Shown: positions 41,391 through 58,032 of the stretch, piece after piece
Numbering within the stretch: the stretch's first letter is position 1
Layout: each line of letters starts with the position of its first letter
Assembly: GCA_038496445.1 (NCBI GenBank)
Contig: JALMLS010000204.1
Coordinates: forward strand, 124,001-188,000
Direction of reading: 5' to 3'
DNA length: 64,000 nt
Origin: Trichosphaerium sp. ATCC 40318
Taxonomy: Eukaryota > Protista > Tubulinea
Notes under the pieces: generated by a model
Seen by the model: only the letters and a program-made list of their open reading frames with translations
Told to the model about the DNA's origin: nothing
Databases searched by the model: none
Position numbers and translations under genes: made by a program

Positions 41391-42965
41391 GTGGGCATGG
41401 AGGTGAATAAAAAGAATTGTTTTCAAATTGCGTCTGTGTCTGAATGTGTGAGTGTGTGGGAAGCGTTTATGGTTGAGGATGAGGATTGGCCATGGTTACG
41501 TAGTTGGATAGTATCTGGTATCAAGGTAGTACCAGAAGGAACGGTGGTGATTGAGTCAAAGTTAACTAACTCAAGCACGTGTAAAGAATGGGAAGAGTTG
41601 TTGTCACAAGATATAGAAAGGGAAGCTAAGTTGGGATGGATATATCCGTCAGAGATTGGGAGAAAGGTCAATAGGTTGGCAGTAGTACCTAAGTATGATG
41701 ACTATGGTAAGTTTAGAAACAAGATAAGGCGGTTGGTGTGCTTGAATCTTCCAGAGGGTATGTCAACAAATGATTTGGCAGATGCGCCAGGTTTTTCATT
41801 GAGGGCGTTTAAAGAGGCGATTGAATGGGTTAGACACCTTGGATATGATGTGGTGTTAGGTAAAATTGACATGTTCTGCGCATACAGGATGTTGCCCATT
41901 GCGCCAGAGGATCATGATATGTTTGGTTTTATGTGGAAGGGTATTTATTATCGAGACGGTCGACTACCATTTGGGTGGAATTGGGCACCTTGGTATTTTG
42001 TCAAAGTTATGAACATGATATCAAGGGCGTTTGCAAAATTGGGTTACAAGGCACATGTAGTGTACATTGATGACTGGTTGATTATTGCTAGAACAAAAGA
42101 GGAATGTGGGAAAGCAATGTGGGTGTTAACTCGTTTATTACGAGACTTAGGTTTTATTATTACAGAGGAAAAAATGGAAGGTCCAACTAAGCAGTTAATA
42201 TTTCTGGGGTACAAGTTGGATATGAACAGTTTGGAGATATCACTGACGGGCAAAATGAAAAGGAAGATTAGGGTTATGCTGGATGAAACCCTAAAGGCAA
42301 ATAGGGTTAGGGTTAAGGATTTACAAAGTGTAGCAGGTACACTTAATTTTGCAGCACAAGTAGTCTATGGCGGTGCTACATTCTTGAGGCGCATATATGC
42401 AAACATGGCTGGAACGGGTTCCAATAACAGATGGGTTAAATTGTCTAAAGGTTCCAAGGAAGATTTATTATGGTGGTCTAAGTTTATGGATATGTGGGAT
42501 GGGAAAGCAGTGTTAATTAAACCGTTGGAGAAGGTTAGCACATGGGTACAAACAGATGCGTCAGGGTTTGCAGCAGGCGCTTTCTTTGACAACCAGTGGT
42601 TGGTACATAAGTTTGTTGGGAAAGAAAAAGACTGGCATATTGGGGTTAAAGAGCTTTATGCTTTTTGGATGGCTGTAAAGGAATGGGGTCATTTGTGGAA
42701 AAATAAGGAACTAGTCAATGTGTTTATCGACAATACAGGCACAGTTTCACATGTGAAGAAATTGGTGGCCAAGAAAGAAGTTTTTATGGGGTTTGTGAGA
42801 GATATACAAACATGGTCAGCGGTGCACAGGTTTAGACTGTGCCCAAAGTATATTAAATCGGAAGAGAATGTGTTGGCGGATCCACTCTCCCGGCTTAAAT
42901 TTGGTGTTTTCCGAAAGGAGCTCAAAAAACAAGGGATTTTTAAGGTGTCTGGTAGGTTCATTTAA
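41391..42965 (+). CDS. Reverse transcriptase / RNase H (DIRS-type)
   Basis: KIDMFCAYRML, RLPFGWNWAP, VYIDD and FLG in RT; TDAS, KELYA, IDN and NVLADPLSR in RNase H. Confidence 0.96.
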   Translation: MGMEVNKKNCFQIASVSECVSVWEAFMVEDEDWPWLRSWIVSGIKVVPEGTVVIESKLTNSSTCKEWEELLSQDIEREAKLGWIYPSEIGRKVNRLAVVPKYDDYGKFRNKIRRLVCLNLPEGMSTNDLADAPGFSLRAFKEAIEWVRHLGYDVVLGKIDMFCAYRMLPIAPEDHDMFGFMWKGIYYRDGRLPFGWNWAPWYFVKVMNMISRAFAKLGYKAHVVYIDDWLIIARTKEECGKAMWVLTRLLRDLGFIITEEKMEGPTKQLIFLGYKLDMNSLEISLTGKMKRKIRVMLDETLKANRVRVKDLQSVAGTLNFAAQVVYGGATFLRRIYANMAGTGSNNRWVKLSKGSKEDLLWWSKFMDMWDGKAVLIKPLEKVSTWVQTDASGFAAGAFFDNQWLVHKFVGKEKDWHIGVKELYAFWMAVKEWGHLWKNKELVNVFIDNTGTVSHVKKLVAKKEVFMGFVRDIQTWSAVHRFRLCPKYIKSEENVLADPLSRLKFGVFRKELKKQGIFKVSGRFI

Positions 42966-53098: not shown

Positions 53099-53377
53099 TG
53101 TTGCACTGAAGCTGACTTGATGACAGCTAAAATTAAGGCAGGCTAGATTTGACGCCTTTAACAAACACTTTCAACCATTACATTGATAGTCAGATTTAAT
53201 TTAACGGTCTGGTGACAGTTTATTTTGTATAATTAAATAAACATTTCTACTGTACCATTACGCTCATGTACGTTATTAGTAACCAAAAACAAGGGTTTCT
53301 CCTTTTTAGTCGTTAAATGACGCGTCGCCACGTAACCAAACCACGTCAGAAGAAAATCATTTAAAAGCAACCACACA

Positions 53378-56300
53378 ATGAACACCCACGCAATAGCACT
53401 GTTACTTATCCTCCTCATCGCGTTGAGCCAAGCACAGGATAAAACGTGTACAAAACAAAAAGAAACGAACCTACGAGTTGTATCTGACAATGAACCGTCT
53501 TTTGTGGCCCTCCAGGATGTCCAAGTACAATCATAGATGCCTTACAACCCTAAAATAACGGGCTTTTGAACTGTAGGTGGATGCCAAAATTGTTGACTTT
53601 CTAGCGATCGTAGAAGTCACTCAGACATATGTTAATACGTTGGATACTCCAATAGAAGCAGTTTACGAATTCCCTCTAGATGATAAAGCCGCCATTACAC
53701 AGTTCAAGGTGCTTGCTTGTGCTCTAAAATTAGTACTTTTTTGCTCCACGTGTTTTTTTTTAAATTCTCAACTTAGGCAGAAATGGATGGTAGAGTAATA
53801 CACGGGATTTCAAAGAGGAAGAGTGAAGCAAAAGCCGAGTATGACGCTGCGATTGAACAAAAGCATACAGCGTATTTGATGGAACAAGATACTGATGATA
53901 TATTCCGAATGAACGTTGGTAATTTGCCTGCTGGGAAACAAGTTAAAATTACTGTAACTTATATTACTGAGGTTAACGACATTTGTTTAATTGTAGCTGA
54001 ACTTAACATTGTATAGCTCGCTCTTGAAACGCAAAAGATGAGGTTTGTTCTGCCTACTACGGTCGGTCTTCGTTACGGAAGATCATGCGAGGAACATACA
54101 ACAAGGAGTGATACAGTACCTTATACTGTTAATGTACGTTGCAATTTTTTTTTGTGTTGTTTATTATCAATCAGGTTGGCTTGGATGTTGTAATGTCCTC
54201 AGAAATAGGCGAGGTTGTATCGCCTAGTCACGATATAAAAATAAAGGCCCAAGGAAATACAGCAAGAATAGAGCTCGATAGTCCTTCCTTAACAAACGGA
54301 GATTTGGTAAACAAGTTACACCACTGCTTTATTTTGTTCTTATTCGCTTTTTATAGGTTATTTACATCTCTGTATTGACACCGCACAACATGCGTGCTTG
54401 GATTGAAGAACCAAGTAGTACTTACCCAGATGACGAGGTCAAAGCAGCTCTTCTATCATTGTATCCTAGTCATGAAGAGGTGCTCAGAAATAATCATCTT
54501 CCATCATCAAACTTATGGTTTCTTGTCCTAGATGGCTACCGAATCTTCAAAGGAAAAAGAAATAATCTTCCTATTGGATACATCAGGGAGTATGATGCAC
54601 AACAAGTTTGACGACCTTAAGGTACCGGCTTGCTTGTTAAAAAGTTGTTTTTTTTTTTTCTGGACACGTGTTTTATAGTTCTCACTTTATCCTACAGAGT
54701 GATGAAAGTCGCACTCGATTTCCTCCAAACTGCTAGTATGGCGCGTTGCGAAAGAAAATGGAAGTATAACATTATCACATTCGACTCTCAATACACCAAA
54801 TTATACCCAGAAAGCAAGCAGCTTACTTATGAAAATATCAACCAGGCTATTTCTTTTGTGGAGAAACTCGTAGCAGGTATGTAGTCAGTTACGACTTAGA
54901 ATCATGATAACCGATCTAATAATAACAATAAAGGTGGTGGAACTCATGTGTACGAACCGCTACAGCATATCTTTGAACAAGAAGTTGTACCAACATCAAA
55001 GAATTCAATAATCCTTGTTACTGATGGGCAAGTTATGAATACGGGTAATATCTTTTAGTCTTACATCGTCACATCTCATATTATTCTAGGAGCTGTCCTT
55101 GATCTTGTCAAGCAGAATAGTGATGTATGGAGTGTCTTCAGTATTGGCATTGGTCATGGTGTCTCACATGAGGTAAATTAAATAGCACCTATTTTCTCTT
55201 TTTTTAAAGAACTTGAACTTACTTTGTTCTGTTTTTCTTAGCTTGTTAATGGCGCAGCAACCCAAGGAAATGGTGTGGCTGAGTATATTCTTCCAAATGC
55301 TGAACAAGTTAGACCAAAAATGATTCGTCAGCTTGGACGTGCACTAGGAAGTAGAAAAGTAGAAATAGATTCCATAGACTGGGGTACTGACGCTAAAGTT
55401 AATCAGATACCAGCCAAATTACCTGTCATATACGAGGACACACGTCAATTGGTACGTTTTACTACACATAAGATCATTGTTGGTAGTATCTGAGTGAATT
55501 CCAAGAAGTTCACTTCACTTTTCTTTCGAATTCGCGTTTTTTTCTTACATTCCTTCTTAGGTCTATGGGTTCTTACCTAGAGATGCTGAGTTTGTAAGAC
55601 CTATCAAAGTTACTTTCAAATCAGGACATACAGTAGAGATACCTCAAGAACAAGTGAACACGTTTGAAGAAAACGAGACAACAATGTTGATTCACAAACT
55701 TGCTGCAAGAGAGCTCATACGAGAACTACAATATGGTGAAAGAACATTCAACAAAGAAGAAATAGTAGCTCTTGCTACAAGGTATAACCTCATGTCGTCA
55801 GAAACATCTTTTATAGCAGTCGACTACGAAGCGAAGACGGAAGGAGATATGAAACGAACGGTTGTTCCTACTCTCGATCCTGCTCTTGTGCAGCCCACGA
55901 TTGCCGAATCTGGAGCTGCTCCTACCAGGAAGAAGACTGCATTGAGAATGGAGGCGTCATCTTATGCCATGCACGCAGACGCCGGTCCTTCGTATGCTCA
56001 AGATGAAGCTATCTTGTTGCTTGATGTATCTCCATTATCTGTTGGTGTTGGTGATGTTAAAGGCGTTTTTAGACCTATCGTACTACGGAATTCTATTATA
56101 CCTAACAGAAAGGATGTGACAATGCCTGTTTCACATTTTGAGAGGCAAGGAGATGAGATTATTATAAGGGTATATACAGGAGAGCGAGCAGAATCTAAAT
56201 CGAATGTTGAGATTGGTGAAATCAAGGTCAGATTACCTGACGGATATGATGAGGGTGAAGAAGTTACTATCACTGTTGACATAGATGGTACGATTTCTAC

Positions 56301-56663
56301 CCTGCTTTTACTTCCAATGTCTCTTTATCACGTGATATTTGTCATGTTTTTTTTCGAAAGAAAAATACGATTGAGTGTTTTTTATCAACTTTTTTTGTTC
56401 TCAATTGTTTTCTTTTCTTCTGGTTGCTATTTCATTGAGACCTTTGATTTATATAATAACGTGTACACTGTTCATCTAACTGGTTTTTTGTAGTAAATGG
56501 CATTATTACTGTTACAGCTAGATTAAACAAAAGCGGATTTGAAGTTTCAAAACAGTGTTCTCAACCGAAAAGTCTCAGTAACGAGGATATTGAAATAATG
56601 ATCAAAGAAGCTGAAAAATACCAACAAGAAGACTTACAAATAAGAAAACAAGCTGTTTACTAA
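53378..56663 (+). CDS. Signal-peptide VIT + vWA domain protein (VWA5A/ITIH-like) with C-terminal Hsp70 substrate-binding domain
   Basis: Signal MNTHAIALLLILLIALSQA; VIT (PIEAVYEFPLDDKAAI, FRMNVGNLP); MIDAS LLDTSGSM, GGT, LVTDG; ALATRYNLMSSETSFIAV; then LLLDVSPLSVGV...VYTGER...IDVNGIITVTA...LSNEDIEIMIKEAEKY. Confidence 0.9.
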
Positions 56664-57397: not shown

Positions 57398-58032
57398 TTG
57401 CACCTTCCAGTTGAGATTCAACTTGATATCATCGATTTAGACACTTCAGCGTATGTAATTTGGCCACTTCTTTCAAAACAAGCGGCAGTGACCACAAGAT
57501 ACGATGATGAGATGAACAAGCATGGAAAATGGCAGAGCAGAAAAAACCGCCAATTAGTTCGTCAACAGTATTGGAAACATGGCAAGGAGAATGACGAATG
57601 CCATGTTTGGCATGGTGGACAGCTGTATTTACAATGTAATTATGTTAATGGTAAAGAACATGGAGAGTACAAGAGATGGCATAAGAACGGCCAAATATGG
57701 GAGCAAAGTAATTACATCAATGGTATGACAATGGCCATTTGTGGGAGAGTAGTAATTACGTCAATGGTAAACGAGAAGGAAAGCACAAGATTTGGTATAA
57801 GAATGGGCAATTGAAGGAGCACGGTAATTGTGTTAATGGTAAACGAGAAGGAAAGTACAAAAGGTGGTACTATACTCGCCAATTGTGGGAGCAGGGTAAC
57901 TACATCAATGGTAAACGAGAAGGAGAGTACAAGGTGTGGTACGATAATGGGCAATTACAGAAGCAGAGCAATTATGTCAATGGAAAACAATATGTGTGCA
58001 AAGAGTGGAACAAAAACGGTCAACTTGTATAG
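57398..58032 (+). pseudogene. F-box + MORN-variant repeat gene, frameshifted and intronless
   Basis: HLPVEIQLDIIDL F-box like the 28-29 kb paralogs. There is a frameshift near 57725 where part of a repeat is missing, and no ATG upstream in frame. Confidence 0.75.

Follow-up and report, generated by a model that had tools for sequence, protein, structure and literature searches.

The window analysed here, a 64-kb stretch of DNA from Trichosphaerium sp. ATCC 40318, contains on its forward strand a gene for a protein in which a VIT-vWA body is followed by the interdomain linker and substrate-binding domain (SBD) of an Hsp70 chaperone (Table 1). The original prediction had placed, within a single spliced open reading frame, a signal peptide followed by VIT and vWA domains, the latter with its MIDAS intact, and then by the Hsp70 linker, β-sandwich (SBDβ) and lid helices A and B. 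This order was borne out by Pfam matches, motifs and alignment, and the N terminus appears to be of the secretory type.

Table 1. Features of the VIT-vWA-SBD gene, with positions in the window
Feature	Position	Strand	Basis or remark
5' UTR exon, 3' end	53245..53267	+	RNA joint 53267->53350, run X1
5' UTR intron, 82 nt, GT..AG	53268..53349	+	RNA joint
CDS, 805 aa	53378..56663	+	13 exons, ATG 53378 to TAA 56661-56663; frame-keeping model and cDNA joints
CDS exons	53378-53524, 53577-53708, 53777-53971, 54017-54133, 54175-54306, 54357-54479, 54532-54621, 54696-54876, 54934-55044, 55090-55172, 55242-55451, 55561-56287, 56494-56663	+	
Putative signal peptide, aa 1-19	53378..53434	+	hydrophobic core of 12-13 residues; S-Q-A/Q fits the -3/-1 rule; predicted cleavage site
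VIT domain, aa 50-158	53577..53971	+	Pfam PF08487; split by intron 2
vWA domain, aa ~292-450	54559..55280	+	phmmer E 1e-84 to P0154
MIDAS, intact	DTSGS 54577-54591 (D298/S300/S302); Thr376 54942-54944; Asp403 55023-55025	+	motif positions
Intron 7	54622..54695	+	spliced out in RNA (54621->54696, no shift possible); ends GT..AC in the window
ITIH/VWA5A-like region behind vWA, aa 451-600	55281..55839	+	phmmer to VIT-vWA relatives; ends in the conserved ...TSFIAVD strand
Low-complexity tether, ~54 aa	55840..56001	+	unalignable between relatives
Hsp70 interdomain linker ILLLDV	56011..56028	+	aligned to E. coli DnaK 388-393
SBDβ sandwich, aa 664-760	56029..56525	+	Pfam HSP70, PDB sequence matches, pocket residues; intron 12 (56288-56493) falls inside
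Lid helix A and about 11 residues of helix B	56574..56660	+	DnaK alignment; TAA 56661-56663 next

Gene structure and transcript

All introns of the coding sequence, including the one within the SBD, are spliced out in cDNA contigs of the public run X1. A single X1 contig of 2,225 nt covers part of exon 2 and continues from exon 3 to the stop codon with intron 12 removed, confirming transcription through the SBD, and other contigs cover the joints of exons 1 to 3, among them that between exons 1 and 2. The X1 cDNA comes from another strain and shows six single-base differences (three synonymous and three nonsynonymous), too few to judge selection. The introns measure 41 to 206 nt and have GT..AG ends with the exception of intron 7, which reads GT..AC in the window and leaves the frame open. 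An alternative placement of intron 7 at donor 54606 and acceptor 54697, which also keeps the frame, was ruled out by the RNA joint 54621->54696. Upstream of the start codon, an in-frame TAA is found at 53230-53232 with no ATG in between, provided that the UTR exon is contiguous. Based on these data, the VIT-vWA-SBD locus is a real, expressed gene.

Neither paralogues of this gene nor housekeeping genes were found within the 64-kb window. As side observations, Atlas searches with an Ariadne exon matched only broad eukaryotic clusters, and a retrotransposon RT had relatives at ≤35% identity.

Domain composition and predicted structure

Residues 1 to 19 show n-, h- and c-regions and contain the most hydrophobic 15-mer of the protein, as judged by eye and hydropathy. 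The VIT profile matched exon 2 (E 1e-11; profile positions 6 to 49) and exon 3 (E 9e-20; positions 51 to 111), while single-exon Pfam matches of the vWA domain were weak; the part of P0154 that aligns with it carries Pfam VWA_3/VWA. Similar to VWA5A and ITIH proteins, the window protein contains a VIT domain, a MIDAS-bearing vWA domain and the conserved region behind it, and its nearest sequence relatives are VWA5A-like proteins. The C-terminal module distinguishes it from ITIH1 to ITIH5, since ITI_HC_C is replaced by the Hsp70 SBD; PF06668 matched no exon in single-exon Pfam searches. Only 4 cysteines are present in the 805 aa.

The linker had been predicted to start at about 56011 in the same exon as the preceding region, and ILLLDV indeed lies at this position in exon 12. 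The Pfam HSP70 profile matched residues 146 to 242 of exon 12 (E 3.5e-10; profile positions 379 to 474) and exon 13 (E 3e-6; positions 476 to 527). The HMM check proposed earlier was therefore positive for both PF08487 and HSP70 on single exons, and as both matches continue across introns, they confirm the splicing and lie far outside what chance would produce. HSP70 coverage begins only at profile position 379, that is, without the part corresponding to the ATPase domain (NBD). The absence of this domain, which had also been predicted, agrees with a negative tblastn search of the 64-kb window using four NBD-bearing relatives. An upstream ATPase domain joined to the open reading frame was considered and rejected, because of this negative search and because a contiguous UTR exon would close the frame at 53230. 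The C terminus (...KQAVY) contains no KDEL or HDEL, as foreseen, and no EEVD.

Alignment with DnaK revealed that the substrate pocket is conservatively hydrophobic (I401V, F426M, V436I, I438I, I472V and L484I), with the arch residues being M404V and A429S. Divergence is greatest in loops L1,2 and L3,4, which contact the substrate. The alignment stops near residue 535; among the latch positions, R467 is replaced by Asp, and D540 and H544 are missing. The lid is truncated, and a complete lid with its latch is absent. As in canonical Hsp70 proteins (HSPA8/HSPA2/Ssa1, BiP and DnaK), the linker is hydrophobic, SBDβ has eight strands and a hydrophobic pocket, and helix A of the lid is present. In contrast to these proteins, the window protein has no ATPase domain, latch or EEVD/KDEL ending, its lid ends about 11 residues into helix B, its N terminus appears to be of the secretory type, and the identity is only about 38%.

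When SBD affinity was ranked by PDB E-values, the best sequence matches were cytosolic Hsp70 proteins (6e-10 to 3e-9; HSPA2, Ssa1 and Hsc70 SBDs at 6e-10 to 1e-9), followed by BiP (2e-7) and DnaK or mortalin (7e-7). A phylogeny distinguishing these three groups had been suggested. An SBD tree did not resolve the origin, with the window SBD grouping only with P0002 on long branches, and the order of cytosolic Hsp70 ahead of BiP and DnaK is that of the E-value ranking.

Structural statements made here rest on AlphaFold models of two homologues, P0002 and P0151, which are 28 to 36% identical to the window protein. In the P0002 model, SBDβ has a pLDDT above 90, and Foldseek matched the SBD to those of Hsp70, DnaK and BiP at about 3.3 Å over about 130 columns, with oligomeric, lid-truncated BiP (7A4U and 7A4V) and Geobacillus DnaK (2V7Y) among the top matches. 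The P0151 model (pLDDT 86) has an SBD that superposes on that of human HSP70 at 1.0 Å, and its first ~620 aa match the structure of ITIH1 (6FPY; PMC7170535) with an E value of 6e-32. The segments equivalent to the tether have a pLDDT below 50 in both models, and thus the tether of about 50 aa is predicted to be disordered or flexible. The linker likewise has a pLDDT below 50 in both monomer models and is therefore not confidently placed in the monomer.

Related proteins with the same modules

The VIT-vWA-SBD architecture is, among the sequences found, rare but not unique. The metagenomic proteins P0151/P0007 and P0156 have a signal peptide, the same domain order and a truncated lid and lack an NBD. 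The same order, again with a truncated lid and without an NBD, is found in the nearest relative, P0002, which is encoded on a genomic contig (L005; GC 30%) of a different organism and whose N terminus lies off the contig. P0151, P0156 and P0002 are 28 to 36% identical to the window protein. On the VIT-vWA tree, P0151 and P0156 fall into another clade than the window gene, and hence the fusion may be convergent. The SBD of P0002 ends earlier than that of the window protein, inside helix A, suggesting that SBDβ is the retained unit. Between these two proteins, the SBD is 34% identical and the vWA-C part 48%, which points to faster evolution of the SBD than of the vWA part and agrees with relaxed or diversifying selection no less than with changed specificity.

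In a second group of relatives of about 1,230 aa (P0009; P0152/P0024 in GCA_003202625.1; and P0011 of Nonionella stella), the VIT-vWA part is located between an NBD and the SBD. These proteins share the three modules with the window protein, and their vWA C-terminal region is joined in the same way to the LLLD linker and SBD, but they differ from it by their N-terminal NBD and full lid. The C terminus of P0009 and P0152 is EEVD or IEDVD, and neither has a signal peptide, whereas P0011 has both a signal peptide and an NBD. The NBDs of P0009 and P0152 carry the substitutions D8->S and K70->H (DnaK numbering) and are probably inactive or degenerate, so that ATPase activity seems dispensable in this group. 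SBDβ is complete in every full-length relative, the lid is lost progressively among relatives, and nearly every VIT-vWA-linked SBD retains the linker motif. P0154, the closest of the VIT-vWA relatives that lack an SBD, ends in an ordinary, different C terminus.

The architecture had been proposed as undescribed. In line with this, a literature search returned no description of the VIT-vWA-SBD or NBD-[VIT-vWA]-SBD form, nor of NBD-less SBD proteins, and the combination of HSP70 and VIT is absent from the Atlas clusters nearest to P0151; however, as described above, the form itself is shared by P0151/P0007, P0156 and P0002, next to NBD-bearing forms. To our knowledge, there are hardly any natural proteins that use an Hsp70 SBD without the ATPase.

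Possible functions of the fused SBD

The reading that we favor, with a probability of roughly 40%, is that the gene encodes a secreted ITIH/VWA5A-like VIT-vWA protein with a tethered, NBD-less and lid-truncated SBD, which would serve as an ATP-independent peptide clamp and, together with the MIDAS site, allow bivalent capture. Secretion, peptide binding and the biological role are all inferred. SBDβ would form a clamp that stays open at all times and takes up hydrophobic peptide segments in extended form, and with lid and latch missing, binding and release are both expected to be fast. DnaK variants that lack the lid retain peptide binding, at lower affinity and with faster exchange. The site of action of the protein would be extracytosolic (secretory pathway, phagosome lumen or medium), where neither ATP nor J-proteins nor exchange factors would be available. 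The vWA MIDAS could provide a second, metal-dependent binding site, so that clamp and MIDAS together might capture or bridge unfolded or foreign proteins.

This clamp model is suggested by the conservation of pocket and linker, the truncated lid, the absent NBD and the homologue models. Counted against it are the diverged L1,2 and L3,4 loops, the lower identity of the SBD than of the vWA-C part, the small number of cysteines, a signal peptide judged by eye and hydropathy, and structures taken from distant homologues. In addition, the NBD-docking linker is strictly conserved though the NBD is absent, which a simple holdase function does not explain. The ATP-independent holdase or peptide-capture role put forward originally is plausible with regard to the retained pocket and truncated lid, but the SBD is the faster-evolving part, and there are at least three further mechanisms that would also fit.

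The first of these takes the conserved linker as its starting point and, although we think it unlikely, has a real chance of being correct. The free ILLLDV linker would itself be an Hsp70 substrate and occupy the SBD of a neighboring molecule, leading to auto-inhibition or to self-assembly in which VIT-vWA units are chained into multivalent polymers that competing hydrophobic ligands would dissolve or remodel. Such a contact is known from BiP, in whose oligomers the SBD of one protomer engages the interdomain linker of its neighbor (PMC4608358; see PMC7758071 for structures). Consistent with this, the linker is the best conserved Hsp70 stretch in nearly all VIT-vWA-linked relatives, it is left unplaced in both monomer models, and the oligomeric BiP structures matched by the P0002 model likewise combine a lidless SBD with an exposed linker. 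However, 7A4U and 7A4V were engineered by truncating a complete, NBD-bearing chaperone, whereas the window protein carries a naturally truncated SBD in fusion with an adhesion scaffold. The linker may also be kept through its continuity with strand β1 or through recent descent from NBD-bearing ancestors, and in the fragment P0013 it is degenerate.

Less probable than such self-assembly is a bait-and-trap or integrated-decoy function, in which linker and SBD would mimic a host chaperone attacked by microbial proteases or effectors, and once this bait is cleaved or bound, the vWA MIDAS would be able to lock onto the attacker, by analogy to ITIH4 and MASP-1/2. ITIH4 is described as being cleaved in a protease-susceptible region, after which it forms an inhibitory complex with that protease in a vWA-dependent manner (PMC7793589); the same study names the MIDAS and divalent cations. 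The window protein is comparable in layout alone, with the tether and linker directly 3' of a body that has, via its homologue P0151, the ITIH fold; the bait mechanism is an analogy, as is the whole of this reading. The scaffold evolves more slowly than the SBD, and Hsp70-linked proteins occupy at least three separated, supported places on the VIT-vWA tree, suggesting that the C-terminal module was captured or swapped repeatedly, but this tree was made with a quick method. Furthermore, no PADLOC family was matched, and a secreted decoy of a cytosolic chaperone requires a lumenal or extracellular attacker. More doubtful again is the wider idea that the VIT-vWA scaffolds of this protist form a bait-and-trap or decoy family that repeatedly captured pieces of host machines, of which the window gene might be a secreted member displaying an Hsp70 bait, with the MIDAS as the lock.

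It is improbable, in our view, that the SBD is a passive or decaying relic of an NBD-VIT-vWA-SBD ancestor that lost its NBD and most of its lid, with function residing in the VIT-vWA part alone. NBD-bearing relatives do exist, lid loss among relatives is stepwise, the SBD sits on a long branch and is less conserved than the vWA-C part, and a single origin of all VIT-vWA-linked SBDs is not rejected by an AU test (P = 0.41). Against this, the frame is intact and expressed over about 150 aa and two exons, residues of core, pocket and linker are kept among lineages with only about 34% identity in the SBD, and no full-length relative has an incomplete SBDβ. The ordinary C terminus of P0154 also speaks against a relic, as it indicates that the SBD can be lost when the domain is not needed.

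Still harder to uphold is a split Hsp70, in which linker and SBD would act in trans with a separate NBD or with BiP in the ER lumen in client delivery or regulation. In the ATP state of canonical Hsp70, the linker and the RNxxIP turn contact the NBD. Both elements are canonical in the window protein, and P0011 pairs a signal peptide with an NBD, but no NBD gene lies within the 64-kb window, an ER retention signal is absent, and the NBDs of P0009 and P0152 look catalytically degenerate. Finally, an assembly chimera or a false model joining a VIT-vWA gene to an Hsp70 pseudogene fragment is hardly credible and is refuted by the continuous cDNA contig of the other strain and by the same vWA-to-SBD junction in P0002 on the independent contig L005; moreover, the fusion point lies inside a single exon and so cannot be created by splicing errors.

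Taken together, an expressed gene places an Hsp70 SBD on an integrin/ITIH-like adhesion scaffold that is putatively secreted, a combination found again in distant proteins. If the clamp binds peptides on its own, the protein would be a natural ATP-independent extracellular binder of the Hsp70 type and a test bed for the control of an SBD by lid and linker without allostery. If the linker occupies the cleft of a neighbor or serves as a bait, it would represent a new use of a chaperone module, in polymerization or in immune-type trapping, and a decoy function would make it a eukaryotic microbial counterpart of the integrated decoys of NLRs. The window gene provides a concrete, clonable entry point into VIT-vWA chimeras.

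Transcript and gene model

Three-frame translation and splice-site tracing resolved the gene for the VIT-vWA protein ending in an Hsp70 substrate-binding domain (SBD) into 13 exons, and its product, after RNA-based correction of the gene model, is 805 amino acids long. The introns measure 41 to 206 nt, and all but intron 7 have GT..AG ends. In cDNA contigs of a public SMART-type run (X1), all introns were spliced out, the exon 1-exon 2 joint included. A single 2,225-nt contig covers part of exon 2 and exon 3 through the stop codon and lacks the 206-nt intron splitting the Hsp70 part, and thus a spliced transcript spanning this part, named in the original prediction as a check, does exist. The X1 RNA differs from the window at six single bases (three synonymous and three nonsynonymous), indicating that the RNA donor was another strain and that this evidence is independent of the assembly. 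The two ends of intron 7 read GT..AC in the window, and the canonical AG two bases further downstream would break the reading frame; either the 3' splice site is noncanonical or the strains differ here. In one cDNA contig, template-switch adaptor sequence adjoins position 53572, within intron 1; rather than marking an alternative start, this loose end probably reflects a cDNA truncated at its 5' end.

Features of the studied gene and of the surrounding window
Feature	Position	Strand	Remarks
MORN_2 repeat ORF, 441 aa	8314-9639	-	E 9e-69
Reverse transcriptase, Ngaro-like element	41391-42965	+	
5' UTR intron, 82 nt	53268-53349	+	GT..AG, X1 RNA; upstream UTR exon ends at 53267
Studied gene	53378-56663	+	ATG at 53378, TAA at 56661-56663
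VIT	exons 2 and 3	+	Pfam E 1e-11 (profile 6-49) and 9e-20 (profile 51-111)
Intron 7	54622-54695	+	removed in X1 RNA
Linker ILLLDV	56011-56028	+	canonical in alignment with E. coli DnaK
HSP70	exon 12, residues 146-242	+	Pfam E 3.5e-10, profile 379-474
HSP70	exon 13	+	Pfam E 3e-6, profile 476-527
MORN_2 repeat ORF, smaller	57398-57814	+	directly downstream of studied gene

Elsewhere in the window, the reverse transcriptase had relatives of ≤35% identity only (5.8 billion clusters), and the host lineage seems to be poorly sampled.

Domains and the Hsp70 module

When Pfam was searched exon by exon, the profile pieces abutted across introns, with VIT continuing over intron 2 and HSP70 over intron 12. 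The vWA domain gave a weak Pfam signal on single exons; the N-terminal 615 amino acids matched VIT-vWA proteins with a Pfam-annotated vWA domain (E 1e-84), and the residues of the metal-binding MIDAS motif are present (D298/S300/S302, T376, and D403). Residues 1 to 19 are more hydrophobic than any other segment and form a predicted signal peptide with n-, h-, and c-regions. The C-terminus (...KQAVY) lacks KDEL, HDEL, or EEVD, and tblastn with four relatives bearing an Hsp70 ATPase domain (NBD) found no such domain in the 64-kb window. Together with the Pfam HSP70 matches, these results bear out every observation of the original prediction: one ORF with a predicted signal peptide, VIT, and a MIDAS-intact vWA, ending in an Hsp70 linker and SBD, with neither an NBD nor KDEL/HDEL.

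In the DnaK alignment, the RNxxIP turn is canonical, hydrophobicity is conservatively kept in the pocket (I401V, F426M, V436I, I438I, I472V, and L484I), and the arch residues are V/S in place of the M/A of DnaK. The protein ends ∼11 residues into lid helix B; of the latch positions, R467 is replaced by Asp, and D540 and H544 are absent. Judged by sequence, the C-terminal module is a natural lidless SBD. The top matches in a PDB sequence search were cytosolic Hsp70 SBDs (HSPA2, Ssa1, and Hsc70; E 6e-10 to 3e-9), followed by BiP (2e-7) and DnaK or mortalin (7e-7), a ranking that points, at modest resolution, to a eukaryotic, cytosolic-type source.

Predicted structures of two homologues, P0002 and P0151, stood in for the window protein. 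The SBD-beta of P0002 was modeled with a pLDDT of >90 and matched Hsp70/DnaK/BiP SBDs in Foldseek (∼3.3 Å over ∼130 columns), the best being the lid-truncated oligomeric BiP 7A4U. In the P0151 model (mean pLDDT 86, pTM 0.73), residues 1 to ∼620 matched the inter-alpha-inhibitor heavy chain ITIH1 (6FPY; E 6e-32), and the SBD superposed on that of human HSP70 at 1.0 Å. The disordered tether and the linker had a pLDDT of <50 in both models. The P0151 model also shares its ITIH-like VIT-vWA fold with PDB 9e5c chain 4s (E 6e-23), an 809-residue component of the 96-nm repeat of the flagellar doublet in Trypanosoma brucei, and hence the scaffold also has structural roles inside cells.

Relatives and origin

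With exon 12 as the query, HMMER was run exhaustively against 1.84 billion cluster representatives; it returned no close relatives (best E 3e-15) and a small set of proteins combining VIT-vWA with an Hsp70 SBD. The metagenomic proteins P0151/P0007 and P0156 have a signal peptide, VIT, vWA, and an SBD with a truncated lid. In P0002, the fragments P0008, P0013, and P0004, and others (Logan and JGI contigs), the vWA C-terminal region is joined to an SBD; P0002, the nearest relative, is encoded on L005, a genomic contig with 30% GC from another organism, and has the same vWA-SBD junction as the window protein, with its SBD ending already within helix A. P0009 and P0152/P0024 (unannotated assembly GCA_003202625.1 and Logan contigs) consist of an NBD, VIT-vWA, and a full SBD that terminates in EEVD or IEDVD, with VIT-vWA inserted exactly between the end of the NBD and the linker; P0011 from Nonionella stella has a signal peptide, NBD, VIT-vWA, and SBD. 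These NBD-bearing forms (P0152/P0024 at L001 1404-5141) are about 1,230 amino acids long, and the ATPase of P0009 and P0152 is probably dead, since DnaK D8 is replaced by S and K70 by H.

Word-indexed searches of 5.8 billion clusters brought up hundreds of VIT-vWA proteins, none of which could be added to this set, and none of the Atlas clusters nearest P0151 contained HSP70 and VIT-vWA together. The original prediction did not recognize the architecture as described; a literature search likewise found no description of it, and none of these relatives is named, but the pairing itself recurs in this small protein set. P0001 (Peniophora sp. VDC01256.1, 240 aa) matches HSP70 profile positions ∼364-421 four times in tandem, seemingly as repeated linker/beta1-2 units.

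The SBD tree was unresolved, with the window protein pairing only with P0002, and an AU test did not reject that all VIT-vWA-linked SBDs arose once (p = 0.41). A quick VIT-vWA tree placed Hsp70-linked proteins in at least three places with supported branches between them, each adjoining VIT-vWA proteins with other C-termini, and P0154, to which the window protein is closest among VIT-vWA proteins, lacks an SBD. Repeated fusion or module swapping and a single fusion with later losses are therefore equally likely. Identity to P0002 is 34% in the SBD versus 48% in the scaffold, and the SBD evolves faster. VWA5A-like VIT-vWA proteins of other eukaryotes (P0164, P0247, P0302, and P0212) carry added modules, namely, ubiquitin, UBA-like plus patatin, and nucleoporin FG repeats, and P0212 has a C-terminal tail rich in Cys; such variety is in keeping with a scaffold whose appended domains are exchanged.

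Possible function

We tentatively propose, with a probability of roughly 0.4, that the SBD would act outside the cytosol as a peptide clamp that needs no ATP and is mounted on an adhesion scaffold with a MIDAS, so that clamp and MIDAS would form a bivalent capture or bridging protein. Four features suggest this function: the pocket is kept, lid and NBD are lost, NBDs of relatives appear degenerate, and SBD-beta is what is retained as a minimal unit. The clamp does not explain why the linker is canonical although the NBD is absent, which motivates a first alternative: the linker may be a ligand of a neighboring molecule's SBD, leading to self-assembly or autoinhibition, as it is in BiP oligomers (PMC4608358; PMC7758071). 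A second would be a bait-and-trap mechanism; in ITIH4, a bait region is cleaved and the protease is then trapped via the vWA domain (PMC7793589), and the layout here is similar, with a disordered tether and an Hsp70 look-alike behind an ITIH-like body. An evolutionary relic, a split Hsp70, and an artefact rank lower. The component families are well known; their pairing and the related forms with VIT-vWA inserted behind an NBD are rare and without names and, as far as searched, have not been described. The finding is real and unusual.
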